64,000 nt of DNA from Klebsormidium nitens (taxonomy: Eukaryota; Plantae; Klebsormidiophyceae): the NCBI GenBank assembly GCA_000708835.1, contig DF236956.1, positions 248,001 to 312,000 of the forward strand, in the 5' to 3' direction. A program made the position numbers and the translations under genes. How positions within the stretch are numbered: position 1 is the first letter of the stretch; the number at the start of each line of letters is the position of its first letter. Under the pieces are notes generated by a model, which did not search any database, was not told where the DNA came from, and was given only the letters and a program-made list of their open reading frames with translations. Shown here in pieces: positions 294-33,148 of this stretch.

Positions 294-1573
294 CCACAAA
301 GGCCTTCTTGAAGATCAGCTGGTCGTGCAGGATGGGCCCTAGCGGAGGGGGACAAAGCGCCCATATAAAGTAGTTCCCGTCAAACTTATCCATAGCGTCC
401 AGCCAAAAGTCGACCTTTGTTCTGTCAACCGACGAGCCACCGAGGGGTGCGTTATCGTGGTTGTCTGCCCACCTGGAGACGGGTTAGCAAAACCCTGTTT
501 TTGGACCCAAACCTGCATTTGCAGTCCGGAGTAAGCCCGACCCTAAATTGAACCAATTGGGCTGACTTGGTAAGGGTACTGGATGGGTGTCTGCCAATTC
601 TTTTTTTTGGACAGCTAATAAATGAAGTAAGCTTAAGTCAAAGAGCTTAGTAAGAGCTGCAAAGATCGGAGGGGCTTGGTATGCATTTGTCCAACCTACT
701 TCACAACGAATCCAGGGACTACCAAATGCATAGTCGAAGGTGTATCTCCTGTGTGAGGAACATGGTCTTTGCCCAAACCTGACAATATGATCATAGATGC
801 AATCCCAAATTCAGAACTCTTCATAGCTTCGGTACAAGGTCAGTTCCACTTTCGCAAACGATAATGTAAATCCCTCTTTTCTCTGCTCTTCCAGACAGAA
901 TTCCACAGTCACCCATTCTGCTCCTGTCAACCGCCAAGACATTGTTAGAGAGCATGGTGCTAGGCTCACTTCATAATCTCCAGAGACTCCGTAAGGATAG
1001 TCCCATTGGGGAGGGCAAGAGCAGGTACAGTGCCCTTAGGGTTCACTTTCTGCACGTAACTGCGCTGCAGGTTTTCACACAGGAAGGTGTGAACGAGCTC
1101 CAAGTCGTACTCGATACCCTTCTCCTCCATCAGAACTCGTGCCTGTAAGAAGAAAGCAACAAGTATTGGTTGAGCACGTTGCGACAAGCAACTCTGCGAT
1201 GCAGATCCAAGAGTTTCTTGATCAACGTTGTTGCGCTGACAGAGATCTGAAGCAGAAGAAAAGAAAAGGGCAAAATTGCAGATTCCAGAGCTTGTCTAGC
1301 CATCACGAGGCGTGCGGCCCGCCTATCACAAGCCTTGAGGTAAAAGCCCAATGCCTGCAGAAAGAGAATATTATGTCGTTTTCTGGCGCTTTGTGGTACA
1401 GTATGATCATCCCATAAGCTGCAAAACAGAACAATGTGAGACATCTGGATTTGAGAGCAGATCATTTCCTGGAATTAAATAAAAGTGGGTTCTGGCCTTC
1501 TCACCTTCATTGTGGCATATGATGGAGGAAAGAAGTACAGGAGGGGCTTGGTTAGCGCCATGGAAGCAGCCAT
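294..1573 (-). CDS. Glutathione S-transferase-like protein (GST N-terminal domain), 3' end unresolved or beyond the window
   Basis: Exons 1573-1505 (MAASMALTKPLLYFFPPSYATMK), 1142-970 (ARVLMEEKGIEYDL...VNPKGTVPALALPNGTILTESLEIMK) and 472-294 (WADNHDNAPLGG...DFWLDAMDKFDGNYF...). All junctions are GT-AG and phase-compatible. The NPKGTVP and ES motifs match the GST-N fold. Confidence 0.8.
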
Positions 1574-3428: not shown

Positions 3429-5349
3429 AATCATTTATGGCATTTGGTTCTTCTCTTCTGAACTTTGCCCCTACTCCTTCAAGTCGATTGCAAATGATAG
3501 GCAGTCGGCTAAGTCTGAAAATCTGGATCGACTGCCCGTTGAATGCTCCTTGCTACGGCACTCAGGCGCCCCTGAATCGGCCGCAACGGGGCGATTCTAC
3601 GGGCGCACGCGCGTTGCAAAGATTGACCGCGCCGCTCATGCGCTAAATTAAGGTATCGCTGCAAAGTTGAAATTAGTGGGCCAATCTTCGGATCATCATG
3701 GAAATTTTGAAAGGGGTGAATCAATGGACTTGTATGACGGGGTATTGAACGGACCAAAGACGGGTTACATTAGCTGAAACCAAGAGTACGAACTCCCGAA
3801 GAGCTAGACTTTCTCAGAAAAAAAATACAAAAATGACGCGAAGTAATCGGGCACGTTCCTGATGTTCAATTGACAGCTTATCGCAAACGTGCCAGAAAAC
3901 TTGTGTGCATTGGCCAGTCAAGACAGCCTATGTAGGCCGAACTCAATACGAGGACGTCGTGGCACGACTTGAAAAAGGAGGTTCTCAAAGACGTCAACCA
4001 ATGTACAATTGAGCGGGAATGTAGAGCTTGATTTGTGGCGTCAGCTGAGTCACAACGTCTGACTTTGGCGATATGGCCATGGCCAGAAAGTTTCTTCGTA
4101 GCCACATTGGGATCAAGATCAAGTCATCGCAGGCAGTAGAACAGAAATTGGGCTCGCGAAGCGTCTCTGCGAGAATCCAGCGTTACCCCGCACGAAACGA
4201 GTCGCATCCGACCAGTCAGATACAAAACCAGGATCTTGATCAAGCTGGCGGAGGACAACAGGCGAGAAGTTCGAGTCTTGTGAAATACTGCCCAAAAGTG
4301 GAGGAGTCACAAGGTTCGTGTTCCTGGCGTCAGATTGCCACCATCAATGTCCTTGCTGGCCATTAGGCCACACGAGACATTTTCATGGCCATTATAATAT
4401 GCAAAAACAACCGGGATGATCTTGATGTGAGGGCTCAATTGCAACCCTGTAGAGGAAACTTTTTTGCACCAATTAAATTGCCTATTACTAAGCTAGCGAA
4501 TACAGCTTGCGCCCCAATGCGGGATGCAGTGACTTCCAACTTGAGCTTTAAGGAGCATAACTCAAGAGAAGTCGGGGCTGAATATGCCTGCAGGGTCGAC
4601 AAAGCCTCTGCAAGAAAATGCAACGGAGTTTATATATCCAAACGAGAGACCTTGATCCGTACAGACCCGGCGTGTACGGGAGTACTGTACTTGAATTCCA
4701 TCGCATATAGGGCGTGCAAGTCATTGGGGTGGAGACTATATACGGATGACTTTGCATAAGCGGTGGCCTCAGAAAAGAGAGATTGCCCGCCTGTGGCGCA
4801 AAATCAGAACGGCCAGGTCATAGGTCGACGTCGGCCACAGTTTCAAATCAGCGATTCGAGGCCAAGCTCACTGGGCCGCATGATCAGCAGGGTTTCTGAC
4901 GACGCTTCTTGCCACTTATCTACATTTCCTCTCAAACCCACTTCTTCGAACACACAAAGAAAGGCAGCCGCAAGCCGCAAGGGCAAGAGGAAAGACATTC
5001 TGCCCGAGGTTTCAAGCAGATGACGAGCTCGGATTTCACGAGATCAAAGTTGTCATGCCACGACGTCATGTTATTGCTTGCCTGCTTATGCCAGCGTTGA
5101 ACGAAGGAACTTAGAAACGCATGGGAGCTGAATATAAGTTCTAACTGACAAAGAGAGAGCGCACACGACAGGAAGATCAAATTTCAAAAAACGTTCCGGC
5201 TTAAAGATCCGGAATGAAGCCTCTGAAGCAAGCCTTGAGAATGGAGGTGCGTGGCTTCAACCCGCAGCGCAGCGCATCACCGGGAAAAACCGTTGTCGAA
5301 CCAAGAGTACTGTATCTGACTTGCAAGCTGTAGTGCTCTTGGGCGGTTA

Positions 5350-8300
5350 AATATGTAACGTGGGCGGGTAACGGTGGCATCGGCGGAAGCCGTAAGGAGA
5401 CTATGGGGCCCAGAAAGCCCCGACGGGATTGCCTTCGTCACCACCACGACATGACAATTCAACACGCTAGAAAGGTGCCTGAACTGCAAGATGTAACTTT
5501 GTATTTTGCGATTAAAGTGAGCAGACGGGCGAGAACCGGTTGGCATCAGAAGGAATCTCGAAGCAACTCGCGGGACAGCCCAGAGAACAGGTGTCAGAGC
5601 CACGGTTTGACGACTTCACCCAGACTCTGCCCGCCTGACATGCAAGCCTGGCAATGGTTTTCATTCTGGCGGTACAAATCAGCAGACAGTTGTGTTTGGG
5701 CAAATCAGGTGGCTTCGGAAGACCTCGATAACGAAGTGTGGGCGCCGATATGCCCAAACGGAAGAGTCGTCACAGCCGCTGAGCCACTGGGCCGAACTTG
5801 GACGGCTCTCCGTACAGAAAAGTATTCTGTAGAAGCAGGTTGGATTCTGGCCTTTAATACCAGCACAAGAACGGAGTACCAGGGGCAGTTGACGTCCTAA
5901 GATACACGTGGGCGCGGAAAGACTCAGACGGAAAAGTCGTCATAACCACAATCTGACAATTCTACTAAACAAGAATGCCTGCATTAGGTGGTAAATGGAG
6001 TAGTACGACTCCGGAACAACAGCACAGCTCTTCGCAGGTCACTGTGGCGTCGGAAGAATAACGCTTAGCAACTACTACGGATGGGCGAGGAAGCCAACAC
6101 GCCTCTTGACTTACCGAAACGTTCCCGTACGTTGGCGGTACAGCCACAATATAACGACTCTGCTTACAGATGGCCTGCTTGAGTCGGAAGCTTGTGCTTG
6201 ATCTGGCGGTCTACTCACCAGCGCAGTTGTGTCTGGACGGATCACAGTGGCATCGGAGGAGTCTTATTACAGCGTTGCGTGGGCGCGAGAAATGCCCAGA
6301 CGAAATGACGTCAGTGCCACAGAGTTTCGATGACTCCACTGACAAGATGGCTTGACTGGAGCGCAAAGTGTAGTGATAACTGGTCTGGAAGCTACACCGA
6401 AGTCGAGCAGGCAAAGGTGGCGTCAAAAAAACCTTCGTCCGAACAGGTGAGGGTGGCTTTGAAAGGCTCCTTGGAAACTTACGAGAACGCAAAAAGCCCA
6501 TGATAAACCGTCTCAGCCACGGTCCCGACTCGTGACTCTGCTTATAGAAAGGCTTTCTCGAAACGCAAGCTGTAGTAACGACTGTGGCCGTTGAACTTAC
6601 ACCAGGACAAGGGCAGGTGAGGGTGGCTTCAGAGAAGCTAGTAGGACAACTTTGGGTGCGAAAGGCCCCAGAGTAGTCTCGTCGCAGCCACAATTTCCTG
6701 ACGAATCAACTTACCGAGTCGGAATAGTTCTCACAGCCACGATCAAACGACTCTACTTACAAGTAGGCTTCTCTGACGGGCAAGCTGTGGTCTTGAATGT
6801 GGCGGTTACACACACCAGCACACTGTAGGCTTACGTGACGGCGCGGCGTCCACAGACCTCTCAGGACTTCTCTAGGCTCGGATTCGAACCAAACGGGGAA
6901 GTCGTCAGAGCCACCAGAATTGTACGGCTCTATCTGAAGAGAGGCTTGCCTAAAGCGCAAGATCTTTGGCAGCCGTGAAAACTAGAACAAGGCAGGTAAG
7001 GTGCAATTGAAGACCGACTTCTAGAAGCCGACTGGGAGCAGAAGGCCCAGCGGAACTGAGCCAGACAATTCTCAAAGACACCGCACTTTCTCGACTCTAC
7101 TTACAAAGGGCTTGCCTGACGTGCACCCTTTAGCAACGATTCTGCAGGTGGATTTACCAGAGGTGAATATCTGGACAGAACGTCATAGTAGCGTCAGCAG
7201 ACCTCTCTGGAAGGTTAAACTTGGGCACGGACATGCCCAGAAAGGAACGTCGTCACAACCACCGAAATTTAACGACTCTACTTATTTCACATGGTCCGCT
7301 TGGATTGAAGTGTGTATGAATGACTTGATTAGGCGAGTCCTCACAGATGACGTGTCAAAGCCGGGTATGGTGGCGTGTCGGAGAACGTTTCCACAAAAGC
7401 TGACATGGGCGCTGAAAAGCCCACATAGAAAGTCGTCATAGCCACTGCAGCTTGATACTCTTGATGACAAAGGCTTGCCTGAGGTGCATATGCTTAGCTG
7501 TAGTAATGATTATGGCGCGGCTGACCAGGTCACAGTGGCCTCGGAGTCGGACTCCTGCGACTCGGATGAGCGCGGAAAGCTCACGGAACAATCGTCACAG
7601 CCACGTCACTCTGAAGACCAGTCTACTTACACAGAGCCCTTGCCTGAGGTGCAAGATGTTGGCGGCTACACCAAAGTCCGAAGATAAGTGTGGCGTCAGA
7701 AGCTCTTGTGGAAAAGGGCTATGGACGAGAAAAGCCCAGGCCCATGTCGTCTAGGAGAAAGTGCGGCAATCTCGCTTACAAGAAGGCCGGCTAATCAGAT
7801 GCAAGCTATAGTGATGACACGGGTGGTTTAAGAGCACGCGGCTTTGGGCATAACCCGGTGGTGTACGAAGTCTTTACAGCTATCCCCATAGACGTCCCAT
7901 AGACGTCTGGGTCGCATAGAGCTGTCGAGAGGGAAAAGTCGCAACTGCCATAACCTGGACGACTTTACGTACAAGAAGGCCTCGCGATTGTTGAGGTGCA
8001 TAATTGTCGTACTTACTGATGTGGCAAGAAAGTACAATTGTCTGGTAAGAACCGGTGGCGTCGGAAGTCTCTCGCACACCAAAGGTTCTGAGCGCAGCTT
8101 AGAACGGCCCAGACAGAATAGTCGTCACAACGACACTCTTTCCAAAAACCACAATTGGATTTAACTCCAAGGTTAAAGCAGCAAAGAATGCCATTTCCTC
8201 AGAGCTCTTGCAAGCGCGTTCCGGAACGTGGCGCGCCCCTGGACCATTGTGCTGCGCGCGCGCGCGCGCGCGAGCCATGATTGCGGGGAGCTCAAAGGGG

Positions 8301-11300
8301 AGCTCAAAGCCCATCAGCTGTTGTAGAGTCCTTTCAAGTTTTTGGAATGAAATAGCGTCAGTTGCTCCATGCTTGCGGTCCGATCTCTGGTCGAAGAATC
8401 CAAAGATAGACAGTTGCAACTCGTGATGACTCTCCGTTCTCTAATCAGGCTCACTAAGCAATTTGACTCTGGATACAATGGGCTGACCGATGTTCGGGGG
8501 AAAGAAACCTAGGAGAGCTCCAAGTACCAACATTCAGTGGTAACTGAGAAATTGCTGAAACAATCCAACCTCATGATCCCCAAAAAAGGCAGATCAAACA
8601 GACGTGAATCCACAAAAAGGAAGAGAGGAGAACCAATCCGCCGGACGTCCAAACCGTAAACAGCTTTCCTTTTGGCACGTACAATTACTTCCTGGCTGAG
8701 AGCGGATGAATAGATAACAATCATTCGCCTCCTGTTGTTCACAAAAAGGAGAAGAGAACGTAGGCAGGACGCTACAAAGCTAGTTTCTTTTTCGACGACC
8801 GAAAGACCTGGTAATTTCTTGACGTGACTTCTATAGTGGGTCCGACGCAGACCACTGTTGGCTTTGGGACCAGCTGGGCCCAGTTCTCATAGCCACAGTA
8901 TGATTCGTTCTGCACTCGAAGGCATTGGACGCGTCGACGCGCCCACCTAAGCTTTTCGACGTCAGCGTTTTGAACATCTTGGGATTGAATGGCTAGCTTC
9001 TGGGAGCGCTGCCGGCGAGGATATCAATTGGAATTGAATTATTGCTCTTTCTTTTGGCGGTAAGAACACTTACAAGTGCAGGTAAGGGTGGCATCAGAAG
9101 CCGGTACTCTGACATACATTGGGCGCGGAAAGCCCCGACTGAAACTGCAACCTTCACCTCCGGGATGACGATTCAACTCGCAAGAAAGCCCGCCTGGGGT
9201 GCATCGTGCTGCGATCGTGTAATCTTGGCGTTTAAAGTGAGCCATCGGGCAGATACCGGATGGCATCAGAAGGAAATTTAGGACCAGGGGCATGGGCTCA
9301 GTAAGGACCTGAAAGAATGGTCGTCACCGCCACGAACCGACGAATCTACTTGCAAGGAATTAAAGCTTGCCTGAGCCCAGGTGCAAGCGGTCGTCGGTTG
9401 CTCTAGCGGCTATACACGAGCGCACTTGTGTTTGGATGATGACGGTGGCGTCGGACAGCTTTTCAAGCGACCGCCAGACGTGGGCGCGAAAGCGCCCAAA
9501 CGGGGAAATCATCACGGCCACCGAGGTTAGACGACTCTTTTCAGAAACGAGCTTGCCTGAAGCGCAAAATCTTTCACATCATCGATTGGCAGGTAACGGT
9601 GAAGTCTGACTTACGACAGCAACGCCAAACAGGAGCGGAAGGGCCAGCGGAACAGTCTTCTGAGCCACCGCACTTTGACGGCTCTACTTACCAAACCTCT
9701 TGATTGACGTGCAAACTGTAGCAACAACCCTGGCGGAAGTAGAACAGCTCAGCATCTGGGCACGACGCCCAAGGTAGCGTTAGCGGACCTCTTTGAGAGG
9801 AAGAAAGGGCGGGTGAATGCCCAGACAGAAAAATCGTCACAGCCCCCGAAGTTTGACGACTCTACTTTGTGCAACAATGCAAATCAACGCTTGATGGATC
9901 TCGGAGGTGCAGGGTATAAGGATAACTCAATCAGGTACTGACGAAATACCAGCAACATGTGAAGCGGGGTACGGCCGTGGCGTTGGAAAACTTTGCCGCC
10001 CACCTGGACATGAGCGCTGAAAGGCCCACACGGAACAGACGTCATAGCCACACTTAATCTGGAACTCTGCTTACTAGAATTTGTTCGCGTGGGGTGAAAG
10101 CCGTAGTATCGATTTTGGTGGATAAACAACGGCATGCATGGAACGCATCGCTGGCGCCGATCTGACGTTGCAGAGAAGAACCTGCGTGAAGAATCCGAGA
10201 GCGAGGAGTCTAATTTGTAACAATCACGACTCTTCGTACATGAAGGCTTGCATGAAATTCAAGCTGGAGAATATGATGATTCGGCGGCTAAACAACAGCA
10301 ATCTTGGTCAAGTAACGATGGCGTCGGGAGGCAATAGAAGACACACTGCGGGCTTGGAAAAGCTCAAATGTCACATTCCGAAGTTCGTCACAGCTGACAC
10401 TCAAACGTCGATTGGTCACAGCTCACACTCAGACGTCGACTGTACTTACTAAAGTGCTTGACTGGTGAGGTGCAAATTGTACGATGATGTTGCCGGCTAC
10501 AAAAGATTGGGACAGCTGAAAACGGTGGCGTCGGAACGCTTTTTGGAAAAGCATGAGAGCATGGAAAAGCGCGGACAAAAGTCGTCTCATCTGCGTACAG
10601 GTTGAGGACTTCTTTGACAGAAGGCTTGCGAGGGGTGCAACTTGCAAGCCGCCCTTATGACTTGTACAGCTACACCAAAGTGGCGTCGGCAGAAATCTGC
10701 GAGTGGGTTGTGCGGTGGAAAGCCCAGACCAAACAGTCTTCACAGCCTCATTCTGCCAGTCCTAGTTACAAGAACCAGATATTGCATCGGAAAAGTTCAG
10801 TTACACATCGGCGCGGGAAAGCCCAGAAGGAAGTGTCTGATCACAGCAGAAACGTGACGTCTCAAAATCTATCGGAAGGCTTGCGTGATTTATAAGGCCG
10901 ACCGACTTTGGCGGACGTCCAGCACAGTGTCTAGGCCGGTCATTCTGTGTGGCATCAGACAAACTTGAACGGCTGAGGAGAACAATGGGCGCTAAAACGC
11001 TCACACGGAACAGTCGTCAAAGCCACCGCTCGATGACACTACTTAAACGTTGAAGGCTCGCCTGAGGTTCATTACGTATAGCCATACATATGCATAGCGG
11101 AAGAAATGACTTCGACGGCTAAACAACCGCTTCTGACACAATATAAGTGGCATCGGCAGGTGGTAATGGCATCTTTAGGCTATTGGGCCCGGAACGGCCC
11201 AGATGGAACAGTCGTCACAGCCACACTCGAACACTCTGACGACCGCAGTTAATAAGTAGAAAAAAGGCTGAGGTGCAAGTTGCAACGACGAATTTGGCAA

Positions 11301-13350
11301 AATTCGAGCACAACATCTGGGCGGCCGGTTTACTTTGGCGTCGAATAAATTTCCAGGCAAGATGGACATGGCGCGAGAAAGTCCACACCAGGGATAGTCG
11401 TTATAGCCACAACTTGACGACACCGCTACCAGAAGCCTTGCCTGAGGTGGGAGCTTTTGACTTCCGCGTATACTGGCGGCTACACACCAGCATCCGGAAC
11501 ATGACGGTGGCTTCAGAAGACCTTTTCAAAGACGCAAAGGTGCAACACATACCACACGCAAAAGTCGTCACGGCCACTCTGGCGGCTCTCCTATTACAGG
11601 TTTGCCAGATCCCTGAGATCTAAGCTGTAGTGATTTTTGGGCGTCTACTATCAGCACGGGGCACGTAACGGTGCTGCAATGAAAGTTTCCGGACACGGCA
11701 CGGAAAGCCCAAACGAGCTCGTCTAAGCCAAAGCTGACGTCCGACTCTTTTGACGAGAAGGCTCGCCGTCATTGCACACTGCAATGATGAATCTAGAGGC
11801 TACAGTGACGATGAGCAGGTAAACGTGGCGTCAGAACAATACCTTGAGGTCGACTGGGCGCAACAGTGCCCACGCGGAACAGGCATCGCAGCCACATGCG
11901 ACTCCATTTTCAAGAGCGCTGGGCTTAGGCCGTGCTTGTAGTCGACTCAAGCCGTTGAACGCCAGCATAATCTCGTGATGGTCACAGTGGCGTGGGAGGA
12001 AGCCCAACACTCAGCCGGGACGGTCATGCGCGCAGAAGGCGGCCTACTCGAAACAGTCGTCACAGCCACAGTTGAGCAATAGGATGACTTGACTGATAGG
12101 ACAAAAACATCTAGGACGCAGCTTGCTTGATGTGAAGCTAGAGTGATGAGATTATGATACTTATGATGAATAATTAACCAAAGCCGGGAAGGTAAGGGTG
12201 GTGTCGGAAGCAAAAACGAGGGGGCGAGAAACTCACACCAGACTCGTTTCAGCCATTGGTTGACTACCAGTTTAGGCTTGCTGACGCACAATTAGCTGTC
12301 GGAAACCAATGGGCGCTTCAGTTCGAACCAGGACAGGGACAGGTGGCTTCGGAGACACAGAATAGATCTCTGGCGCAGAAAGCCCCATTCGTATATCGTC
12401 ATAGCCACACAGTTTCCATACAAAATTGTTGGCACTTCGGTGTTGGCGGAAATTTCAGTTGCTTGCGACATCGAGAAATCTTGCTTGCGGGTCTCATGAG
12501 GTCGGAGTCCCCGCCAATGCCAAGAGCGCTGGGAAAAACGCTAGGTACGGTGCCCGCCTTCTCATCAGGCTGCTTCGTCACACACAGGTAGAAATGGCTT
12601 TTCCAGGGGGTCGGGGAGAGGCCAGGCACAGCCCGAAGAGGGCCACTCCCCGGGGTCCTCCCCTGACTCGGAGGACTCCGGGGATTTCGACAGCTCCCCG
12701 GGTTGTCCGTGGACCCCGGGGACTCAAGTCCGGGGACAGGTCCGGGGAGCGAAGCCGGGAAATGGCAAGGTACTGAGGCCGGGGAACGTTCCCCGGCTTC
12801 TTGGAGCGAGGTGACAGAACACTTAAGAAAGATGGTGTGAACACACGCCGTTCCATCCGTTCCAGAACATGCAAGTGACATGCAAGCAATCATTGTTATT
12901 GATGCACACAATTCTCCGGAAAAATCAGGGGGCGGCGTTGGAAGACATCGATCATCCAAAGCCATCTAGGAGCGAAATGCGCACACGAAGAATCGTCACA
13001 GATACCGGAGTGGGACGACTCTACTTGAAAGAAGTCTTGCCTGAGCAGCAAGATTTTCCGGCGGTCACACATGAGCACAAAGGCAGGTAGCGGTGGCATC
13101 GGAGGACGTCCTAACCACAACTTTACGTGGGCAGGAAAAGGCCCAAACGGAGCGCTCGTCACAGCCACGGCTTGAGTACTCGGACTCTACTCCCAACCTC
13201 ATTCGACTCTGGCGGAGACAGCTCGATCAAGCTTAATGGTTGGAAACGGCGAAACTGTGCCGTCAGAAAACCGACTATTTAAGAGATCAATGGGTGCTGG
13301 AAAGCGCTCAAGGAACAGTCGTCACGGGCACAGAGAGATCCAGAAAGCAG
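5350..13350. repeat. Highly diverged ~170-bp tandem repeat array, ~40 units, interrupted at ~8150-9050 and ~12500-12880
   Basis: Recurrent ordered motifs GGCAGGTRASGGTGGCRTCRGAAG - N15-20 - TGGGCGCGGAAAGCCCA - AACGGAACA - GTCGTCACAGCCAC - TTGACGACTCTACTTACAAG - AAGGCTTGCCTGAGGTGCAAG. GTCGTCA-like anchors lie at approximately 5766, 5936, 6307, 6508, 6901, 7249, 7432, 7591, 8121, 9320, 9508, 9834, 10038, 10384, 10581, 11013, 11211, 11397, 11564, 11718, 12056, 12396, 12992, 13155 and 13318. Consensus was derived by eye. Confidence 0.85.
12500..12880. other. GC-rich insertion interrupting the array, with many CCGGGG motifs and a perfect 20-bp palindrome (12778-12797)
   Basis: The array period is broken between anchors 12396 and 12992. 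GCCGGGGAACGTTCCCCGGC is self-complementary. Boundaries are approximate and no TSD was identified. Confidence 0.5.
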
Positions 13351-16300
13351 GGAATGCAGGGAATTCATTGAAAAGGCCGAAAATTCGAAAAGTGGCGATC
13401 CCTTTGTTTAAGGGATTGAGGAGAGAGCACCGTGAAACAGCCAAGTGCTCCTTAACTTACGTGGCGTTGGGGCGCGACCAAAGATGGCCTCTAAAGGCAG
13501 AAATAAATGTCGCCCTCGCAAGAGGTGAAACCTGATAATCACCGGAGCGACCAGCTGACACGGCACAATGCGTCAACTTAAGGAGAATGAAACAATCAAT
13601 CAATGGCGTCGGTTTCTTTCAAGCACCAGCCCATGAAGCTTGCGCGGCCTCAACGGCACGCCACGCATCGGAAACATCTTGTAGCGCGCAATCGCTGGGC
13701 ATTCAGCTATTCTGAGGAGCGTTTTATAGGTGAATTACATCCGATTCGGCACCGGTCAACAATAGCGAGGCTCGAGGAGGGCGAAAATTTCTTTATTAAA
13801 TGCGCACACTTCTAGAGAAGTGGACCATGGGAGTTCTCCGCTTTACTTTTTGCCCTATCCCCAAGTGCACCATAACCAAGACCTAGTAGCCTCGGAAGAA
13901 CATGGAAAATGCAATGATGGCAATTCAAGATCGCCAGAAAATCGAGCAGTTCGTCACGGCTAGAGAGCAACTTCCTGCCTCAGCGACCAATTTTGAATTA
14001 CAAAGTATGTGGTGGCCCATCGCTTGCAGCAGTAGGACAGACGCCTTTCATTCTGACACGCACATGCTTGTGAAGGATCAATTGGGTCTTACTGTTGCAC
14101 GCTGTCACAAGTACCAGCTGAAGGCTGCAGAAAGGCCAGGCCGGAGGCGTTGTAATCGACGCAGCCTGCACGATGCTTCAAAACGAAGCCTGCCAGGCTC
14201 GCCAGTTGCCTGAACGAACGAGTCAGCTGTTTTGGATGTGTGAAAGTACGAATACGAAATCTGCTTCTAAAATCAGGCCCTTCGCAAGTAATTAATGGTT
14301 CGAACCCACAGGTGGGCAGGGGCCACAAGTTTACAGCCGTACGTACATCCGTTCCATGTTTTCCGAGCGTAGCTTATTGCAGCGGAGACGGCTTCTCGAG
14401 AGTCAGCGGTATTCTGTGGAATGCATATTTAGTTACCGGCCATCGCAAGAGCAGCTGTCAGATCGCTATTGGTATTGGTGTCAGCGCTGCCAACACTTTG
14501 AAAGACTTGAGTGATCGCGTAACACGTTTTCCTGAAAGACGTGTTATGAAGCGACGCACTGTGGAGAACAAAAGGCCCCTAAACGAAGGTTTCGAGTCAA
14601 AGGTGCAATCCAGCAGCGGGAAAGCGACAGATTGGCATCAAGTTGACGGGGCATCTTCTCCAGTGAGCAGTCAAAAGAGCTCCTTAAGATCGTACACTCA
14701 TTGCCAGTCGTATCATCAGCATTCCAGTTGTGCTTTATGCTTCTGGCTCAGAATCAGAGGTCGACCAGAGTTGTTTCTTTTTTCCTACTTTCTCCGCAAC
14801 TAGCTAGCGCCTCCTTCGAAATCCCGAGCACCAAATGATGCAAGAACTGACAGATCATGGTTCCGGACCCACTGAAAGTGTGAAGCCGACCCAAGTAGCT
14901 TTGAAATCAATCAGTTCACTGCTGCTCGCATTTGACGGATGCCTAGACTTTGAAGCACCGAGCTCAAAAGAAGTCTTGGATTACAGCGACATATGCTTGG
15001 AACGTTTTGTTGAAAGAAGACGCTCCTAAATATCCTAAAACATGTTTCAATTGCCGTTCAGAGGTCAACTTTTGCGGGGCCCAGACGGTCCGTTTACCGT
15101 CGGACTTTAAATAGACGCGCAGCGAGGACAATACGTCGAAAGTGAAAGCTTCTGATGGAGGCGAGGCCCATAATCAATTTGCGTTATGTGGGCGACAAGG
15201 AGCAGCACGTCTACGAGAACTTGCCACCTCCCAGAGACGGGCAGTACAGCGGCCGAGTAGAACCGCACAACAGTCTCTTAATCTGTTGCAAAGCTAATCG
15301 ACAAGCGAGTTTTAGCAGGCCTTGTGAATTGGTGGCGTGGGGTTTCCTTGCAGATTGCGCATCTGGCGCCCAAAGGTGCCACAAAAATTCAATCGTCACT
15401 GCCACACGTCTCTCAGGGGCAAGGCAAGTTCATCCCTACTAGTGCGACGGGTTTCGAAAACAGTGTAAGAGCATTGAGAGGGCAATTCCAAGTGGACTGG
15501 ATGAGTGATAACGAGCAGTCAAAGATGCAGCGAGCCGCGAGACTCTTGCAACCAAAGGCTGTTCGCTTAGCATTTGCTACGTTTTCAGACCGATCAAATC
15601 CCAGGTTTGCTTCGACAGCCCGACAAGACGCAGTTTGAACGAATATCCTTTCCGCTGCATCGAAAGAGCTACGAAAACGCCAGCTCGCGACGGAAAGGTT
15701 TGGAAGGCTGCACTTCGGACGAAGCTTAACATGCAAAGATTCTCCAGGCCTTGCCATTCGGCAAAAGCATTTGGGTCGATTACAACCAGGGCCGGATCTC
15801 AAGAGATCTCTGCAAAAAGGACCTCGGCCAAAGGACATGCCATGTGCCACGCAAGAACAATACTAAGAAATCCGTTGCAGCATCGGACCTTCAACTTCCT
15901 GGCCCCTGGAACGGAGAAAGTCCCAAGGATTCCGTCGTCCTTGCTGAATATGAAAGCGATCGTATTATCAAAACTTCCGATCACTTCCAGATAGAAGCCT
16001 CTCGTAAAACTGTGATACAGCGGCATATATATATGACACAGTGCTCTGACATGTTCTCAGCGGGCCCTTTCATCCTCGCCAGCAACTCCAAAACACATCC
16101 TCACACAACCCAGAAGTTTGCTTCGCTGTTCGTGCCACGAGTCACGCAGACCTGGATGTTTCTAGCGCCGTGTTTTCAGAGTGGGGGGTCAGAATAGTCG
16201 TTGAATAGGGTCGGCGGACAGAAGCGCAAGAGCTCAGATTTACAATAGTGGTGTGATCCCTAGAGGCATACAACATACGAAGGTGACTTAATGCAGTCGA

Positions 16301-17790
16301 AAGACCGATGGGGCAGAAGCAGGCCGACCGTTCAGCGTTGACAGAGACAGCGCTCAAGCCTCGCATCTGACGACGAAACTTCCGACGTACAAAAAGGGGG
16401 TTGCCTATTGAGAAGCACTTTGAGTACTGGAAAGCCGCGCGGCTGTTGGATGGGGGCAAGGGGAAAAAGTGGTCCCAAATGTACGTGGGCAAGGTCAAAA
16501 TGTCAACGCAACACGCTAGGACACGTTGCTGGGCGGAAGATTTGGAGTCAAGCTGCGACTTTTGTGGCTACGGCTGACGGACCGTATCTCGCAGCGCCGG
16601 CTGCAGAGCGACAAAAGCCGAGTGCGCTCTGCGAAACAGGTCGAAACAGGAGCGCTTTGCAAAACATCTCAGATCGATCACTTCCTTCAAACTTGCCGGG
16701 GGCGCGATTCTCGTAGTGAGGAGTTGTCAAAAGGACTGAAGTGAGCCAAAGAAGGAACGCTTTGCGTAGACTAGGTGAACTTTCACTTAAGGCTCACTGA
16801 GGGACCTGCGATGAAGTCCGGCCAGTCCTTCTCATTGGGACTCTTCATTTAGACGTCGCAGCCTGAGGACACGTCTGTGCCAGCGGCTTTCTGAGTCGGA
16901 AACACACGACGACAATCGCGCCCTGCACGGAGTTCTCTGAAACGCGACGATAATGTGCATAATCTTTTGTAGGCAATGTAGATGTAGACACCCACGCCCT
17001 CTTGGGATCACACTTTCTTTTTTAAACAATTGTTAGCATGATCAAGGACGTACGACTCGGTGAAGACAAAGCCTCGTGATGTAAATCCGGTCAGACAAAC
17101 CTTTTAAATGGGTACTCCCTACCGTCTGGAATCAATCCTTGAAGCGGTCACTGGCGTCAAATGATGACATACGTCTCTTGCCAGCGGACCAGGCAATTTG
17201 AAGTAGTCACAGGCACTGAGCGCTAGCAGCACTTTAACCCATGCAAATGGTGGAAAGGAAAGAAACCAGTGAACGTCCGTCCGTCCGTCGCACAAACATG
17301 GCGAGCTAACAGGTCCGAGGCTTTTCTAACAGGCAAGATTTTTGGCATTCGTACGCGGGATTGACATTTAAGCTGGACTCATCGGAAACGTTTGTCGCGA
17401 TGCCCAATTCCGTGCCCCCGAAAACGGGGAAAAAGTGTTGAGCGGGTGAAAGTGAAGCTGCTGCAGCACGATTGACGAACAAGAGGATTGTCTTGAAGGG
17501 TCGATCGTCCAAAGCCACTGAAAAATGGTCCAAGTGCGAGAGAGGTGGCGTCCGACCTAATATTCCTTCACGATATATCATTGGTACGGGCGAGATCAAG
17601 CGGTAGTCACAGCCAGTACTCGACTTGTCCGTTCAAACAGACCCGGCGCTCCCGCCAAACACTTGGTGTTGACTCTCAGCAAATCAGACTCTCGAAAGGT
17701 GCAAATGAATCATAAGATGCTGGCAAAAGGAAGGCGACGAGAGCGGGCAAGAAGGCTTGCCGGACTCAAAGCAGCTCTAAATCCGTCCGC

Positions 17791-17920
17791 AAACACAAAA
17801 CACAAAACACAAAACACAAAACACAAAACACAAAACACAAAACACAAAACACAAAACACAAAACACAAAACACAAAACACAAAACACAAAACACAAAACA
17901 CAAAACACAAAACACAAAAC
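17791..17920. repeat. 7-bp microsatellite (AAAACAC)x~18
   Basis: Perfect tandem run read directly. It generates the spurious low-complexity ORFs at 17663-18002. Confidence 0.97.
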
Positions 17921-18879: not shown

Positions 18880-19081
18880 AGCTACGAGCCTCCTCCGCAT
18901 CGTAGCCATTCCCAAGAGCCGGGTCGACCAATTTTAGGATTCTCCCCCCCTAACCCATATCCGTCGCCACTTTGAGGGGCCGCTCCACCCCTTCGCTCTC
19001 GAGCTGGTGTACCAATGGGTGCCCGCTGGTTAGCTCCAACGAAAGCACACCAAATATATACAGATCACATCACATCTCAGT
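18880..19081 (-). pseudogene. Decayed receptor-like kinase C-lobe fragment (subdomains IX-X)
   Basis: The minus-strand frame starting at 19081 reads TEM*CDLYIFGVLSLELTSGHPLVHQLESEGVERPLKVATDMG*GGRILKLVDPALGNGYDAEEARSL. This matches the RLK/Pelle motifs TEKCDVYSFGVLLLELITG and LVDPxLxxxYDxEEA, with two in-frame stops. Confidence 0.75.
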
Positions 19082-21080
19082 ACCCTAAGATGGCCACAGC
19101 TAGGAGAGAAGCAGCTCCAGCAGCAACCGCACCAACAATAGGTCCAACTGGAGGGGGTGGTGACGTTGAAGAAGGAGGGGATGGTGACCATGAAGAAGGT
19201 GGGACAGCTCCACATAATGAGCTGTAACCACAATTGTTGCAGACCAACTCCAGGTTTCCAGGACTGAAACTACTGCGGTAGAAGCGGCAGAAACTTGGAG
19301 GTATTGGCCCGGAGAGGTTGTTGCCGGAGATCTTGAGTTCGGTAAGGCTGGTCAAATTGTTGAGCTCCGGGGGGATAGGCCCAAAGAAGTTGTTGTGGGA
19401 GAGGTCCAAGGAGGTGAGTTTGGTCAGGCTGCCGATTTCGGGGGGAATGGGCCCAGAGAGGTTGTTGTGGGAGAGGTCCAAGGAGGTGAGGTTGGTCAGG
19501 CTGCCGATTTCGGGGGGAATGGGCCCAGAGAGGTTGTTGTGGGAGNNNNNNNNNNNNNNNNNNNNNNNNNNNNNNNNNNNNNNNNNNNNNNNNNNNNNNN
19601 NNNNNNNNNNNNNNNNNNNNNNNNNNNNNNNNNNNNNNNNNNNNNNNNNNNNNNNNNNNNNNNNNNNNNNNNNNNNNNNNNNNNNNNNNNNNNNNNNNNN
19701 NNNNNNNNNNNNNNNNNNNNNNNNNNNNNNNNNNNNNNNNNNNNNNNNNNNNNNNNNNNNNNNNNNNNNNNNNNNNNNNNNNNNNNNNNNNNNNNNNNNN
19801 NNNNNNNNNNNNNNNNNNNNNNNNNNNNNNNNNNNNNNNNNNNNNNNNNNNNNNNNNNNNNNNNNNNNNNNNNNNNNNNNNNNNNNNNNNNNNNNNNNNN
19901 NNNNNNNNNNNNNNNNNNNNNNNNNNNNNNNNNNNNNNNNNNNNNNNNNNNNNNNNNNNNNNNNNNNNNNNNNNNNNNNNNNNNNNNNNNNNNNNNNNNN
20001 NNNNNNNNNNNNNNNNNNNNNNNNNNNNNNNNNNNNNNNNNNNNNNNNNNNNNNNNNNNNNNNNNNNNNNNNNNNNNNNNNNNNNNNNNNNNNNNNNNNN
20101 NNNNNNNNNNNNNNNNNNNNNNNNNNNNNNNNNNNNNNNNNNNNNNNNNNNNNNNNNNNNNNNNNNNNNNNNNNNNNCGGGGGGATGGGCCCGGAGAGGT
20201 CGTTGTGGCCGAGGGACAAGTCGGTGAGGTTTGTAAGGCTGCCGAGCTCTGGGGGGATGGGCCCGGAGAGGTCGTTGCGGTGGAGGTACAAGTCGGCGAG
20301 GTTGATAAGGCTGCCAAGCTCTGGGGGGATGGGCCTGGAGAGCTTGTTGCCGGAGAGGTACAAGCCGGCGAGGTTGATCAGGCTGCCGAGCTCCGGAGGG
20401 ATGGGACCGGAGAAGTTGTTGGAACGGAGGTCCACGTAAGTGAGGTTGGTCAGGCTGCCAAGCTCCGGGGGGATGGGCCCGGAGACATTGGTGTATATGA
20501 TGGAAAAGCCGGGGAGATTGGTCAGGCTGCCGAGCTCCGGGGGGACGGGCCCGGAGAGGTCGTTGAAGGAGATGTCCAAGTCGGCGAGGTTGGTCAGGCT
20601 GCCGAGCTCCGGGGGGATGGGCCCGGAGAGGCCGCTGGAGGCGAGGTGCAAGCCAGTGAGGTTGGTCAGGCTGCCGAGCTCCCGGGGGATGGGCCCGGAG
20701 AGGCGGTTGTAGGTGAGGTCCAAGTCACGGAGGTTGGTCAGGCTGCCGAGCTCCGGGGGGATGGGCCCGGAGAGCTTGTTGTTGGAGAGGTCCAAGTAAA
20801 TCAGGTTGGTCAGGCTGCCAAGCTCCGGGGGGATGGGCCCGGAAAGGTTGTTATAGGCAAGGACCAAGCTGTAGTCGAGGTTGATCAGGCTGCCGAGCTC
20901 GGGTGGGATGGGACCTGACAATCCCTTAAATGATAATGAAATACTACTTTGATTCTCAAGGGGGCCCTCGACCAGACTGCCAATCTGCTCAATAGTGGAC
21001 GCATGAACACCACTCTTGAGCCCGCACTCATACAAGATCACCAGGATTAGCATCCTCACAAACAGGTTTGGTGCATCCAT
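19077..21080 (-). CDS. LRR receptor-like protein: signal peptide, 24-aa plant-specific LRRs, Ser/Pro stalk, TM helix, no intact kinase
   Basis: Hydrophobic N-terminus, 11 LRRs (xxLxLxxNxLSGPIPPELGSLTNL) before the gap and 4 after it, a SFSPGNLELVC cap-like motif, a PPS-rich stalk and the TM segment IVGAVAAGAASLLAVAILGY followed by a stop. Frame continuity across the N-gap is unverified. Confidence 0.85.
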   Translation of the reverse strand: MDAPNLFVRMLILVILYECGLKSGVHASTIEQIGSLVEGPLENQSSISLSFKGLSGPIPPELGSLINLDYSLVLAYNNLSGPIPPELGSLTNLIYLDLSNNKLSGPIPPELGSLTNLRDLDLTYNRLSGPIPRELGSLTNLTGLHLASSGLSGPIPPELGSLTNLADLDISFNDLSGPVPPELGSLTNLPGFSIIYTNVSGPIPPELGSLTNLTYVDLRSNNFSGPIPPELGSLINLAGLYLSGNKLSRPIPPELGSLINLADLYLHRNDLSGPIPPELGSLTNLTDLSLGHNDLSGPIPPXXXXXXXXXXXXXXXXXXXXXXXXXXXXXXXXXXXXXXXXXXXXXXXXXXXXXXXXXXXXXXXXXXXXXXXXXXXXXXXXXXXXXXXXXXXXXXXXXXXXXXXXXXXXXXXXXXXXXXXXXXXXXXXXXXXXXXXXXXXXXXXXXXXXXXXXXXXXXXXXXXXXXXXXXXXXXXXXXXXXXXXXXXXXXXXXXXXXXXXXXXXXXXXXXXXSHNNLSGPIPPEIGSLTNLTSLDLSHNNLSGPIPPEIGSLTKLTSLDLSHNNFFGPIPPELNNLTSLTELKISGNNLSGPIPPSFCRFYRSSFSPGNLELVCNNCGYSSLCGAVPPSSWSPSPPSSTSPPPPVGPIVGAVAAGAASLLAVAILGY
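19546..20177. other. Assembly gap (632 N) inside the LRR array
   Basis: Run of N flanked on both sides by 72-bp LRR repeats. The true repeat number is unknown. Confidence 0.99.
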
Positions 21081-22098: not shown

Positions 22099-23509
22099 CC
22101 CTCCCAATGCTTTTGCACGATCTTGTGACTTCCTGCGTCACATATTTTGATGGTCACTTTTGATCAAGTGTGACTTTTGCGGTGGTAGCTCTGCTGGGCA
22201 AAGCTTGTGGGAGTCCGACTCCCACAAGCTTTGACGGTCGCAGAATACTTTTCTGCTTTTCTCGGGACTTAGCCAAAGTAGAGCTTAGGTTTGCAACTTA
22301 TCAACTTACTACAAACAACAGAAGGAAAGAACTCAAACCCTCCCCGGACTCAAACGAGACTCAAACTAACTATCATAACTACAGTGTAGTCAGTTAGCAA
22401 GACCTTTCATTGAATTGGATGCCGCTTTGAGGACATCGTCCATTTCTGCTTCTTGGCATGTGGATTATTCATGATTCTCATGGTATTTTATAATCACCAT
22501 GCCATTTATCGGAGTGCTATTTCGTATTGAAGCATGAAAGACGGAACAAATGTCCGACTTGTTCTTCAGAGAGACAGACAAGATTTTTCTTGCTATCTTG
22601 GGGACCGCAGGTGGTGAGAATGCTTCCGGCTCTGCCATTCGTATCATTGATATCATAGCCTTCGGCACATCAATCTATTCAATATATTACAAGTTGCCAA
22701 GAGGGCATGGACGCAAAACTGTCTCACTCGCCCCGTGATTGCGAGTGGAAAGGAGCAAACATGTGTAGGATGGCTTGTCATGTATATGTCTGCTCTTTTC
22801 CGGTAAGTTAGCCAATTCATGATATTCCGTTACAGTCCTCAACGCGTGGCTAGCGCTCGTGTTTGTCGCCAGCGCGTGCCAGCGTGTGCAGAGAGTGTGC
22901 CGCCGTGATCAAACCTGCTGTAGACTCATATTTATTCCCCCCCAAAAAAGTCACGGTACGTCTAGCAAAAACACCGCGTTGGACCCCCGCTGGACATCCC
23001 AAAATTTGCTCGCCATCAGCTAGGCCAAAATGAGCCAGGGGCCGAAGAGCTGCCGGGAGTTCAGGAGTTAGCGTGGTTCTTAAAAAAGGAGCGGTGCTGG
23101 AATCAAAGCATCTCGCACCGTACGGGAAAAGAGATGCAAGCCTGAAACTCGAGCCGGAGACGCAGCGCGCCTCAAGTACTGCAACCTGGAGATGAAAAAG
23201 AGAGGAAAAAGACAGGACCCATCGAACGGATAAACCGGCCATATAACATGCTTCTTGGAAAAGGCATGCATCCTTTGAAGGATGGGATCTGACTCGGAAC
23301 ACGAAACGTGAGACCTCAAAGCGTGTTGAAGCGCTCACAACGTCTGGTATCGATGCCCCACCAAACGTCGCCGGCATGTTAAATCACTACTTAGCTAAGT
23401 AGGGAAGCATAACGAACTCAGATTAAGGTGGAAAGGTGAAAGCGGACAAGCGACGACACCTGAAGATCGCTCAACGCAACGGACCTGACAAAGACAGGCA
23501 CAACAGCGG

Positions 23510-23550
23510 TTTTAGGGTTTTAGGGTTTTAGGGTTTTGGGTTTTTGGGTT
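23510..23550 (+). repeat. Interstitial telomere-like repeat (TTTTAGGG)x3 plus two degenerate units
   Basis: TTTTAGGG TTTTAGGG TTTTAGGG TTTTGGG TTTTTGGG. TTTTAGGG is the known telomere motif of Chlamydomonas and Klebsormidium. Confidence 0.85.
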
Positions 23551-24159
23551 GCGGATGTGCGGGGTACACTTTTGAGCTAGAACGTGGTGGGTTGAAAGGC
23601 TGGCGAAAGCAGCTTTCATGAGCGACATGGGGCACCAAGCGGACGCCCAAACACGTCTGGTATCAGATCCACTATGTATACATCTGAAACAACCAAGGTC
23701 TCAACCAAGGTCTCAGGAGCGGCTCCCACAGTCAAGGGTCGATCAGATAAATTGGCTTTACCGAACCTGGTAATCGTTTCAAGATGTTTTCAGCATCCAT
23801 GCGATTGATAGAATGCCCAACAGGACTCTTGAATTACTCTTTGAGCATCCGGTGTGAGTAACCCAGCTCCCAACGAGGCCTGACAGTAAATCAAGCATGT
23901 TACATGATCACAAGAAACTTCAAACTCAACGGTTTCAAGTTACTACCATGTTGTAGCGGCCTGCGCGGTCGCTTCGGCATAAGCACAAACCCACGAGCTT
24001 TACAGCGTCGGTAGTCCATCAACTTAAAGAGAAGCAACATACACACAAGTGGGTGGGGCTACGCGCTAGCGGCATCGTCCTGACGGTAGAAATTACGTTC
24101 GTGGGTATGATCGAAGGAAGATATTGACAGCGCATGTGAAGCAGCGTATGCACTGGCAT

Positions 24160-27100
24160 CGGAGAAGAAAAGAAGGTACTGCAAATGGCTCAAAGAAGAC
24201 CAGCCGTACAGTCGTCACTGCCACGGTTTACTGCCTGTGAGAGGGCAACCCACCATACAGCGCGTCTTCGAGTCTTCAAACGGCGGCCTCCAAGCCTCCG
24301 CACCAGACTGTTGCAGGTATCGCATAATAGATATAAAGGTACAGATCGAACCAGGAATTTACATCATCAAACGTCATTGGGGTAGATGCTATTGTGAAGT
24401 TGAACAAGAATTAGAAGCAAAGTCTTCCAGAACAACGTGCGGTCAAGGAGCAAGCAACCTTGAGCAATGAGGTGTGAGACAGCAGGCCGGCCACATGAAT
24501 GGAGCCCGCCAAGAAGACCGAATCCTATAAGTTGGCGGAGTCTGCGTAAACGTCGGAAAAGAAGGACTGGCTCAGGGCTTGGAGACACTATCCGGAAAAC
24601 ATGTCCTCTCAGTATAGCTCCAAAACCTGCCGCCGAGCTCCTCTTCCGGACGTCCTTGGAAGACGGGTGCAAAGAGTACATTCTGTCGACGACGAGGTTG
24701 GGCTTTACTCAGCAAACGATTTCCATCAGGAACTTCGGAAACACTCAATACTTTTCAAGAGGCTTAAGAATGCAGGCGAAGTCCTTCTCGAGCCGGGGTC
24801 CTGAAAGAAGGCTGGGGCGGACGGGCTGTCGTCAGTACCCCGGGACTGACGACAATCTCATCGAACTGGCACAACGGTCCTTGGCAGGACCACCGGGGTA
24901 TTCTTTCAACCGCGGCGACTCGAAAGTCCAAGGGCAGATTTGGTGTGTCGCCGAAGTTGAGCGTTCACGACCCACTAGCTTTGGTATGCGCTGCGTATAA
25001 ACAGCGGCGTCATAACGTGGCAGAAGACCAAAGAGCTACACAAAAGACCCAGACAGACCATACCGTAAATGAATGGATCCACAGAGTTGTTGGCAAAAGT
25101 TTTCCGCGGATGGCGTCTGAAGTAGACACGGTTTGGCCAGAATACAACCATGCACGCTTTCCTCATAGCCACAGTCGCAGTTTGGCCTAGAAACATGAAT
25201 GGGTGCACTAGAAGAGGAATGTTATCGCGCACTTTTGAGCTCTCAGATGGAAAAACTAGGTCTGCGGGGTTTGAAGACAGGCAGAGAGCCTTGAGTCCGG
25301 GGCGAACCATACACGACTCAGAGATTGGGAGCGAGTGGTGCCGAGCCCGCATTGCATTTCTCCGCACTGAAACGAGCAGATCGGACGGGTGACAGAGAAT
25401 CTACTTCAGTCAGTAATGGTACTCTTATGGGCTCATTTGTTCCCAAGAACTCGAACGCCTCCACACGACTGAAATACACAACGGGTAGCATCCGAAGACC
25501 CAAGGCAAGCAACTGGCCAGACTGGTAGGTGACCAAGGAGTCGTCACAGACACCGTTGGTCTCGTTCGCTATACTGAAACATGTCAGAAAACTTTCAAAA
25601 GCTGCAACACCTGTAAACTGCACGCAAGAAAAATGAAGAAACAACCATCAAGAGCCACAAGCAGGGTATGTCAAAGTCAGAATATGGAGCATTGACGGTG
25701 ACAGAACCAATGTTATTACCAGCCGGAAAGAAATGCAGATTTGACACTGCAGGCAAAAAAGCCGGGGCTGAAAACTGGAAGTTGCAGTCTGGACGTAAGA
25801 TACAGAGAAGCCTAATTGGTTGAAACGCGGCTGAACAATATGCTAGACCCTATCGACCTTGGTCTCTGGTAGACGAAATACAGGTGAATACAGGTGGCGT
25901 CCGAAGTGCGACGAAAAAGGAACATGGCCGTAAGGCCAGGCTATCGTCATAGCCACAGTCGACTTCTGACCCAGACAAACTGAGCACAGGAAGGAAGATC
26001 TTCAAAGAACATTCCCAACGTTCCAAATGAGCAAATCAAATGCTGCGGGGTTTGACGGACAAAGAAGGAGCTCCGCTTCAGAGCCCAATCCAGAACGTCT
26101 TCACGACTAGAAACCTGGCTGATGCAACGCCCGCAGAGAGAGTACGCAGACGGACCAATCCGAGCGCGCGAAATCAACAGAGTTACTATGGTTAACCACG
26201 GTAGTCCTTCAGACTCAAAACCGAGAAGTTCGCGCACTGCCCGCACGAGATCTAAGATCAGAACGGATGCTATTTGGAATTTATACAAGCAAAACGCTGG
26301 CCCTAAAGGTGACCAGGCAGTCGTCACAGCCACCGCTGGAATGGTCGTAATTAAGGGAGTGTGTTTCGACGTGAACAGCAAAACTTATTTGGCGCACACC
26401 GAGCTTTAATGTTGCACCAGAGATTGCGGAAAGAGGAATGCCAAGAAATCGACCAGCGAAAGCCGCCCACGATCTTACAAGCAGGGGGTTTGAATTCAGG
26501 ATGATCAGGACACTTGATGGTGTTGGAACCATGGAACAAACCAATCGGAAGAGATGCGCGTTTGACAGTGCAACCAACAAGGCAAGGGCCTACAAGTTGG
26601 ATCAACCGCATTCTGGACCGTGAGACACAAACAAGCCGAGAAAGTTGGAAGACGGCGGGATAACAGGCTATTTCGTATCGACCCTGATGCTGGGGGAAAT
26701 CTGCTGACTAAAAGACGTGAAACATACTCGCCCACGATACCTAGTACGTCCGGATGTTCCGCGGGATCCAGAATCCTCTCTCGAACTAAAGCAGCGAAAT
26801 ATATGAGAGGTGGAAGCAAAATCGTTGAGCGTTGTCACTTTGGTGCTCGCTCTCCCCAACAGACCAGTTCGTGAGGCTTAACCGTGTGATGCGGAACAAG
26901 ACAAACCTCCTTAAGAGTAGGGCTTGTTGAAATGTGCCAGAGTGGGGCCTCCTGGAGCGTGGCTGCGTGCGATGCCCGGGCGGAGCACAAGCAGGTTGTT
27001 GTGATTGAGTCGGTGCTGAAGTTCAGGCTCCGGACATTAGCAGCAAAAATGTGAAATCCTGGGGCCCATCTGAAGATGGAAAGGTGGCAAAACCAACCTT

Positions 27101-32117: not shown

Positions 32118-33148
32118 TCAACTCGCCTCCGCCTTTGGCTTTGTCTTCGGTTCCCGGTATGCCTCCTTCCAGGACACCTGCTCGCTTGTGTCCGCAGAAA
32201 CTTTCCAGTCATGCTTTGCTAGGCCCCGAATCTGCTCCTCTGCCGGGCCCGGGTGAAACGGGGAAGAGTACCAGAGGCCCCATGCTGACCCTGATCGTCC
32301 ATCCTGTGAAATGAGTGGGGAAAACAGTTCATCAAATTTTCTGCGGTACCACCCTCTAGTGATTACGAGAAGACAAGAGAAGCCTTTGTGCAAGGAAAAC
32401 CACACCACCAACATCTCTAAGGAATTCCAAAAGGGATGTGGTTGAAAAAACAGACGGTGTTATAAAGAGTAACGCATGGTGGTGGTATGTACAGCGCAGG
32501 CTGATTCAGGAAGTCTCACAAAAGAATCTGTGCCTTCAACGACGACTGCCAATTCAATTAGAGGCCTCAGAAGTTGTCACTGAGCAGAGTTGCTCATCTT
32601 GACTGGCTAATGCAAACAAGCGCTTCCTGATTTGGAAGGCAAGTTAGCAGCAGTCCCAGCAGTCCCATTGCTGCATGATTCTCCAATTGACATTCCCTGT
32701 CATTAAACCTTCTGAGACTAAAAGGCGCGCCACGCGCGGCGCGGGGCTTGAAAATCTGGTCTTCAACGGGTTCGCAACAACGCCTCAAACCCTTTCCGGA
32801 ACAGCGTAAACAGATGAATGGCATTTTCCAGACCATCAGGAATGGCAATGTTAGCACTCTCAAAATCATTCCATCCTCAAAAAACTTCTCCTATGCCTTG
32901 TTGATTACTCAAGCGATTCCACTCACATGCGACTTCACCCTGACTTTTGTAACTTCGTAATACTCTGTCTCGCTCCAGGGTTTCCGCCGCAGCTTCGACC
33001 CCACCCCCCAGTTCGGCAGATCTGCGACCACCTCAAAAAAGTTCTTGCCCCGACGCTTTGCTGAGCTTGTCAGCCCCCCAGCAGCTGCAGCTTCCGTCTT
33101 TGCAGCAACCTCCGCAGCTAGAATCAAGCACCGCTGGAAAGCGCTCAT
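32118..33148 (-). CDS. MRPS34: Mitochondrial small-subunit ribosomal protein mS34 (2 exons, ~135 aa)
   Basis: Exon 33148-32927 (...KNFFEVVADLPNWGVGSKLRRKPWSETEYYEVTKVRVKSH) joins exon 32303-32118 (DGRSGSAWGLW...) across a phase-0 GT-AG intron. It matches the plant mS34 pattern LPNWGxG...W...YEITK...DGxHGxAWG, recognised from memory. Confidence 0.85.

Follow-up and report, generated by a model that had tools for sequence, protein, structure and literature searches.

In a 64,000-nt window of the alga Klebsormidium nitens (scaffold DF236956.1, positions 248,001-312,000) we found about 55 same-strand units of a box C/D-like design, some 40 of them in a dense tandem array at 5366-13332 and some 16 scattered, the whole set spanning 4035-31437 on the minus strand. 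Upstream of every module lies the candidate host gene, namely that for mitochondrial ribosomal protein mS34 (S34; 32118-33148, minus strand, two exons; KFL_000070360 / GAQ78067.1). The modules are confined to one strand, are positioned downstream of mS34, are retained in a second Klebsormidium and have no match in ribosomal RNA (rRNA). At a probability of roughly 0.6, we read them as a cluster, specific to this lineage, of orphan RNA genes of box C/D-like (kink-turn) type, in which one module and its flank expanded in tandem to give the now partly decayed 5.4-13.3 kb array. The locus resembles an array of orphan C/D small nucleolar RNAs (snoRNAs), yet fails two tests that define guide snoRNAs.

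Module design and strand

Box C/D RNAs have a terminal stem that closes the two boxes, and these together make up a kink-turn (PMC5122169). Judged by its order of motifs, the Klebsormidium module has such a kink-turn-closed, box C/D-like design: on the minus strand GUGGC-U-RUGAYGA is followed, after a short linker, by a hairpin of 5 bp, then by some 22 variable bases, U-CYGA, a single base and GCCAC. An intact example is found at 11147-11224, with the 5' arm of the closing stem (GUGGC) at 11220-11224, a box C-like GUGACGA at 11212-11218, the inner hairpin UGGGC/GCCCA at 11184-11201, the variable stretch just 5' of box D at 11158-11183 (median ~22 nt over the units), a box D-like CCGA at 11153-11156 and the 3' stem arm GCCAC at 11147-11151. 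The boxes, RUGAUGA and CUGA in their canonical form, occur here as the variants RUGAYGA and CYGA, and the terminal stem is 5 bp long with 90% of its cells paired. Internal C'/D' boxes were not recognisable; the conserved hairpin occupies their place.

No bases are better kept than the unpaired GA/GA of the minus-strand kink-turn. Among 38 array modules the kink-turn positions are held in 34 (G1b), 35 (A2b), 28 (G2n) and 36 (A1n), with both GA intact in 26. The 24 modules that are either dispersed or from the other Klebsormidium have a purine at L2 (24) and a U at L3 (22), and the two GA are present in 23 and 21. The kink-turn reading accounts for these bases, which are left without partners in the original prediction, made from the letters of 5350-13350. 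That prediction placed the fold on the plus strand, as a pseudoknot, ribozyme-like, attC-like or dimeric-protein dyad array with a core of three dyads. All nine of the dyads it quoted are present, and three, including an 8-bp helix between the spacer and box C, stand in the array consensus. No helix, however, pairs above the shuffled level when the units are aligned and tested for covariation, and the box C/D-like module lies on the minus strand. The next pair of dyad (a), i.e. of the inner hairpin, was said to covary; it is Watson-Crick in 7 of 37 units versus 5.4 in shuffles (p 0.25; 6/35 in another count), a rate so close to the shuffled one that the quoted cases amount to a selection. Dyad (b), GTCGTCA/TGACGAC, is borne out as part of the array consensus but neither as a covarying helix (164 Watson-Crick cells vs. 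167 shuffled) nor as a kept element, as six perfect pairs remain in 3/38 array units and 0/16 dispersed modules. On that count of 3/38 units, the pseudoknot is not supported as a conserved core either, and the G-T mismatches taken to favor the plus strand are balanced in the array or lean towards the minus strand. In the 24 dispersed and other-species modules, wobble also favors the minus strand (G.U vs. A.C, 24 vs. 7), with a nominal p of 0.003 that is too small given shared ancestry, the copies being non-independent. Neither Rfam (0 matches at the gathering score; snoR113, at E 7, is at chance level) nor the phage search gave a match. Together with the strict polarity and the unpaired best-kept bases, this leaves ribozyme, attC and transcription-factor-dyad explanations largely refuted, and we give a plus-strand element hardly any weight.

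The helix of dyad (b) deserves a separate reading. Its second arm, the spacer stretch GUCGUCA complementary to box C (e.g. 11237-11243, minus strand), belongs to the tandem array only, and the helix is nearly absent from the other Klebsormidium. Being confined almost wholly to a few array units, it most likely goes back to the founder unit. It cannot coexist with the kink-turn, as the two are mutually exclusive, and a folding switch between them is conceivable.

Distribution of the modules and the dense array

Polarity is strict. A fuzzy two-motif search returned 43 cores on one strand and 0 on the other, with 0-1 in shuffles, and a covariance model built on 40 modules gave 46 matches in the window, all on the minus strand and none beyond 31.5 kb. 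Since most of these matches are training sequences, the informative part is the polarity and the empty 32 kb of genes beyond mS34. The minus strand is U-rich, as are the introns of the window's minus-strand genes. Motif search and covariance model place the last module downstream at 4035-4105, four more diverged ones within 13886-17616 (at 13886, 15332, 17151 and 17545) and eleven, belonging to recurring subtypes with counterparts in the other Klebsormidium, within 24153-31437 (at 24153, 25110, 25485, 25894, 26267, 27622, 28206, 29010, 29502, 30553 and 31367). The core thereby extends far outside 5350-13350, which the original prediction had overlooked, as it had the unpaired GA/GA motif and a hairpin in the spacer. 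The fourth pair of the inner hairpin is C-G or U.G in the 24 dispersed and other-species modules versus G-C in the array.

Two subtypes were observed besides. One, with a GGGC stem, an RCGAUGA-like box and C in place of the bulged U, is missed by the covariance model; it occurs on the minus strand at 29010-29081 and ~23650-23735 of the window and at 3719, 6217 and 7852 of the other Klebsormidium contig. In the other, a GUAAG and some 40 nt lying upstream of the module (27692-27733, minus strand) are kept between the species (7379-7460 and 5690-5723 on the other contig) and resemble the array spacer. This subtype may be the founder of the dense array.

The ~170-bp array itself is real, as originally predicted. 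An iterated profile recovered about 40 units, all co-oriented, over 5366-13332, mostly with a period of 145-220 bp and a mean pairwise identity of 47%. Each unit of ~170 bp comprises a box C/D-like module of ~73 nt and a spacer of ~95 nt, and gaps in the profile reveal two non-array inserts, one splitting the array at 8140-9075 and a second at 12410-12930. Besides the GUCGUCA stretch, the spacer contains a hairpin, CUUGC/GCAAG (e.g. 7639-7655, minus strand), that shows no covariation, and, roughly 20 nt upstream of the module, a GUAAGU that resembles a splice donor (e.g. 7625-7630, minus strand). The latter is 70% kept in the unit consensus, the same as its adjoining bases, and GURAG is found upstream of the module in 8/38 array, 2/16 dispersed and 3/10 further modules against a background of 3.5%. 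By analogy with mammalian arrays, the donor-like motif suggests that the founder unit may have been a mini-exon plus intron. A plus-strand intron-exon repeat was rejected, with the donor GT in only ~14/38 units, as was a decayed protein-coding repeat, since unit and segment lengths are spread across the three frames with no frame signal and no Pfam match.

Divergence is unevenly distributed within the units. Identity to the consensus is 88% at the module ends and 71% in the best spacer blocks, so that the ends are ~2.4-fold less diverged, although the gap is partly inflated by the anchoring of the alignment on module-end motifs. These figures suggest that the array was under selection for part of its history and, with the persistence of modules at the orthologous Klebsormidium locus, uphold the original suggestion of selection on a structured RNA cassette or polycistronic non-coding RNA. 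The contrast between ends and spacers is also unlike the uniform decay of neutral sequence that would be expected if only the dispersed modules were functional and the 170-bp array were satellite-like and dead, amplified from one of them. We consider that alternative unlikely, but it has several observations to its credit: array stems are broken without compensation, with damage to half of the modules, CpG decay in box D runs in both directions (10 TG, 5 CA), block duplications are visible within the array, and the 14 kb examined in the other species hold no comparable array.

Conservation, expression and surroundings

For comparison we used a contig from another Klebsormidium sample (SRR23617307) carrying the mS34 orthologue and 14 kb downstream. 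It gave 11 covariance-model matches, five in the training set and six outside it, all on the mS34 sense strand. Nearly all pieces alignable between the species outside the two exons are modules, and the counterparts retain the stem, both boxes and the hairpin, while the stretch before box D is lost. Subtypes follow a similar order but differ in number, a pattern that, to judge from the two contigs, resembles a birth-and-death process driven by block duplication. As the modules are kept in a related alga, they probably matter. In a third, more distant relative, with 1.6 kb downstream of mS34 covered, no covariance-model match was significant; a short stem followed by a box C-like motif was observed there at 9533-9600, about 900 nt past the mS34 stop, with a non-significant score.

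Several observations weigh against a cluster of orphan box C/D-like RNA genes. One base more than in canonical snoRNAs separates box D from the stem, and the 3b.3n pair beside the G.A pairs is C.C in 20, C.U in 9 and U.U in only 3 of 38 modules, so that the expected U.U is mostly missing. Covariation over shuffles is lacking for this fold as for any other, the closing stem has a mean probability of only ~0.1 in plain folding with flanks, which means that the fold would depend on protein, and the full module signature is intact in only 19/38 tandem copies. No orthologue of the dense array was reached, as the glutathione transferase contigs end 860 nt upstream and the mS34 contig ends 14 kb downstream. 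Finally, four probable RNA runs compared with 7400-13399 revealed neither expression over modules nor splice joints, at almost no coverage; this negative is weak, since 70-nt RNAs would escape the contigs of runs like these. The runs gave a pair of contigs, 2-3 deep, at 8779-9044 and 12370-12606, each mainly on one of the non-array inserts. None of the listed runs clearly contained the array.

Some of these points fit an alternative in which the modules are never excised but serve as cis-acting kink-turn protein sites, e.g. for retention, termination or stability, within a long 3'-extended part of the mS34 transcript. In two species every module lies downstream of mS34 and on its strand, no small RNA was seen and no target found, and a C at 3b is reported to let a kink-turn fold with metal ions only, i.e. 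without protein, unlike the box C/D kink-turn (PMC4382518). The modules nevertheless have the look of processed RNAs, being self-contained, closed by a stem, uniform in size and ordered with box C first and box D last, and a long transcript was not seen either. We therefore hold the cis-acting alternative to be improbable, though it deserves to be kept in mind.

Annotated genes are absent from the first 10 kb downstream of mS34. At the cluster's other end a glutathione transferase exon lies at 966-1145 (minus strand), and within the cluster a leucine-rich-repeat gene (19077-21080, minus strand), with near-identical 72-bp repeats and a 632-base assembly gap, sits in a module-free region of 17.7-23.6 kb; it may have been inserted into the module cluster. 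In the same region, a 7-base unit forms a perfect run of 18.6 copies at 17791-17920, and a short telomere-like TTTTAGGG run occurs at 23508-23550, with pieces like it at 48879-48901 and 50772-50841. Both cluster ends (2090-2260 and 33370-33560) have GC-rich patches containing GGCCC sites; these have the appearance of flanking-gene promoters, not of terminal repeats. Further away, a minus-strand WD-repeat gene contains three diverged copies of an exon-like stretch at ~160-bp steps (50200-50605). Spliced gene models in the window were searched exon by exon.

Targets, known systems and meaning

The rRNAs used as stand-ins for those of Klebsormidium were contaminant land-plant-like and other eukaryotic sequences. 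Antisense pairing before box D reached 12 pairs in 0/64 modules and 10 pairs in 8, at or below the shuffled rate. The antisense element of a guide snoRNA, i.e. 10-21 nt complementary to rRNA ahead of box D or D', was accordingly not found, and rRNA guiding was rejected. Within the window, self-targeting by the variable stretch did not exceed shuffles either. As a side observation, at least 80 bacterial genome records contain contaminating eukaryotic rDNA, much of it land-plant-like.

Given the drift of the stretch that precedes box D, the modules are more likely to act by protein binding, as scaffold, decoy or end protection, than as rRNA methylation guides. A long minus-strand transcript, read through from mS34 or started at a nearby promoter, would run across the cluster; in each module, box C and box D would fold as a kink-turn bound by 15.5K/Snu13; and the bound protein, as snoRNA biology leads us to expect, would block exonucleases and leave RNAs of ~70 nt or longer, capped pieces.

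A guide function towards non-ribosomal targets (mRNA, transposon or virus) is a different matter, as the variable stretch occupies the guide position of C/D RNAs, has a narrow length range and is the unit's least conserved 22-nt window (0.38 SD over shuffles, vs. 0.58-0.96 for spacer windows). Between counterparts in the two species, however, the stretch is poorly kept, with weak common ancestry still visible; it matches neither rRNA nor the window, and no effector gene was found nearby. A guide-RNA array of this kind is thus quite unlikely. The same holds for its fullest version, a eukaryotic multi-guide system in which long transcripts would be cut to kink-turn-closed RNAs whose ~22-nt stretch directs a C/D-type or new ribonucleoprotein, with amplification of the 170-bp unit and fast change of the stretch producing new guides; we regard it as a long shot.

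Other classes were rejected on several grounds. An integron attC array is contradicted by ~95-nt spacers without coding signal and by the lack of recombinase or phage matches, and, as judged from sequence, a self-cleaving ribozyme array by the lack of an Rfam ribozyme match. Viral or phage origin found no phage match, and the strict core pattern is absent from viral contigs and metagenomes. Looser core patterns gave single scattered matches there, four metagenome loci being at chance level by the covariance model, and two rRNA patterns found nothing in viral contigs. Searches for tRNAs, bacterial promoters and bacterial terminators gave none beyond chance.

SECIS elements have a UGAN/NGAN quartet core downstream of a coding gene, a long helix II and an apical AA loop. 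A quartet-like core downstream of a coding gene is found in the Klebsormidium modules too, but these lack the long helix II and the apical AA loop and come in many copies, and mS34 is not a selenoprotein gene. The motifs of tigRNAs are box C/D-like. TIGR arrays share with the present locus the tandem arrangement and the variable stretches between conserved motifs, but are prokaryotic or phage-borne and defined by an adjacent Tas protein (PMC12045711), whereas in Klebsormidium Tas was not found and each unit has a single variable stretch. TIGR-Tas was rejected, as 19 scanned reading frames gave no Pfam match to a Nop-domain Tas and the flanks encode mS34 and glutathione transferase.

Mammalian SNORD116/SNORD115-type units are kilobases long. 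Those of Klebsormidium measure 170 bp, have non-canonical boxes and diverged rather than homogeneous interiors, and are known here as sequence. Otherwise the two are alike: C/D-type units stand by the dozen, in one orientation, downstream of a protein-coding gene, lack an rRNA target and grow in number by tandem duplication of unit plus flank; orphan C/D arrays in tandem are known from long host transcripts (PMC8162545). In plants, polycistronic snoRNA precursors are standard, and box C/D clusters there share the terminal stem, a box C close to the 5' end, a box D close to the 3' end and clustering on one strand (PMC5122169). Unlike these, the Klebsormidium modules lack conserved antisense elements, recognisable C'/D' boxes and Rfam matches, and form one paralogous family instead of several guides. 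The 15.5K-bound k-turn/K-loop RNAs of mammalian introns are also compact, orphan and equipped with terminal C/D motifs (bioRxiv 10.64898/2026.08.03.742641), but are scattered in introns, mostly without a closing stem, whereas the Klebsormidium modules have a conserved 5-bp stem, an inner hairpin, a family cluster and a predicted binding. None of the titles and abstracts searched reports large orphan C/D-like arrays from Klebsormidium or streptophyte algae.

A family with altered boxes that is kept between species without a conserved guide would make it possible to ask, in a simple organism, what orphan snoRNA arrays are for. The locus further illustrates a way in which such arrays may arise, as conserved, widely spaced modules stand beside the dense tandem expansion of a single module and its flank.

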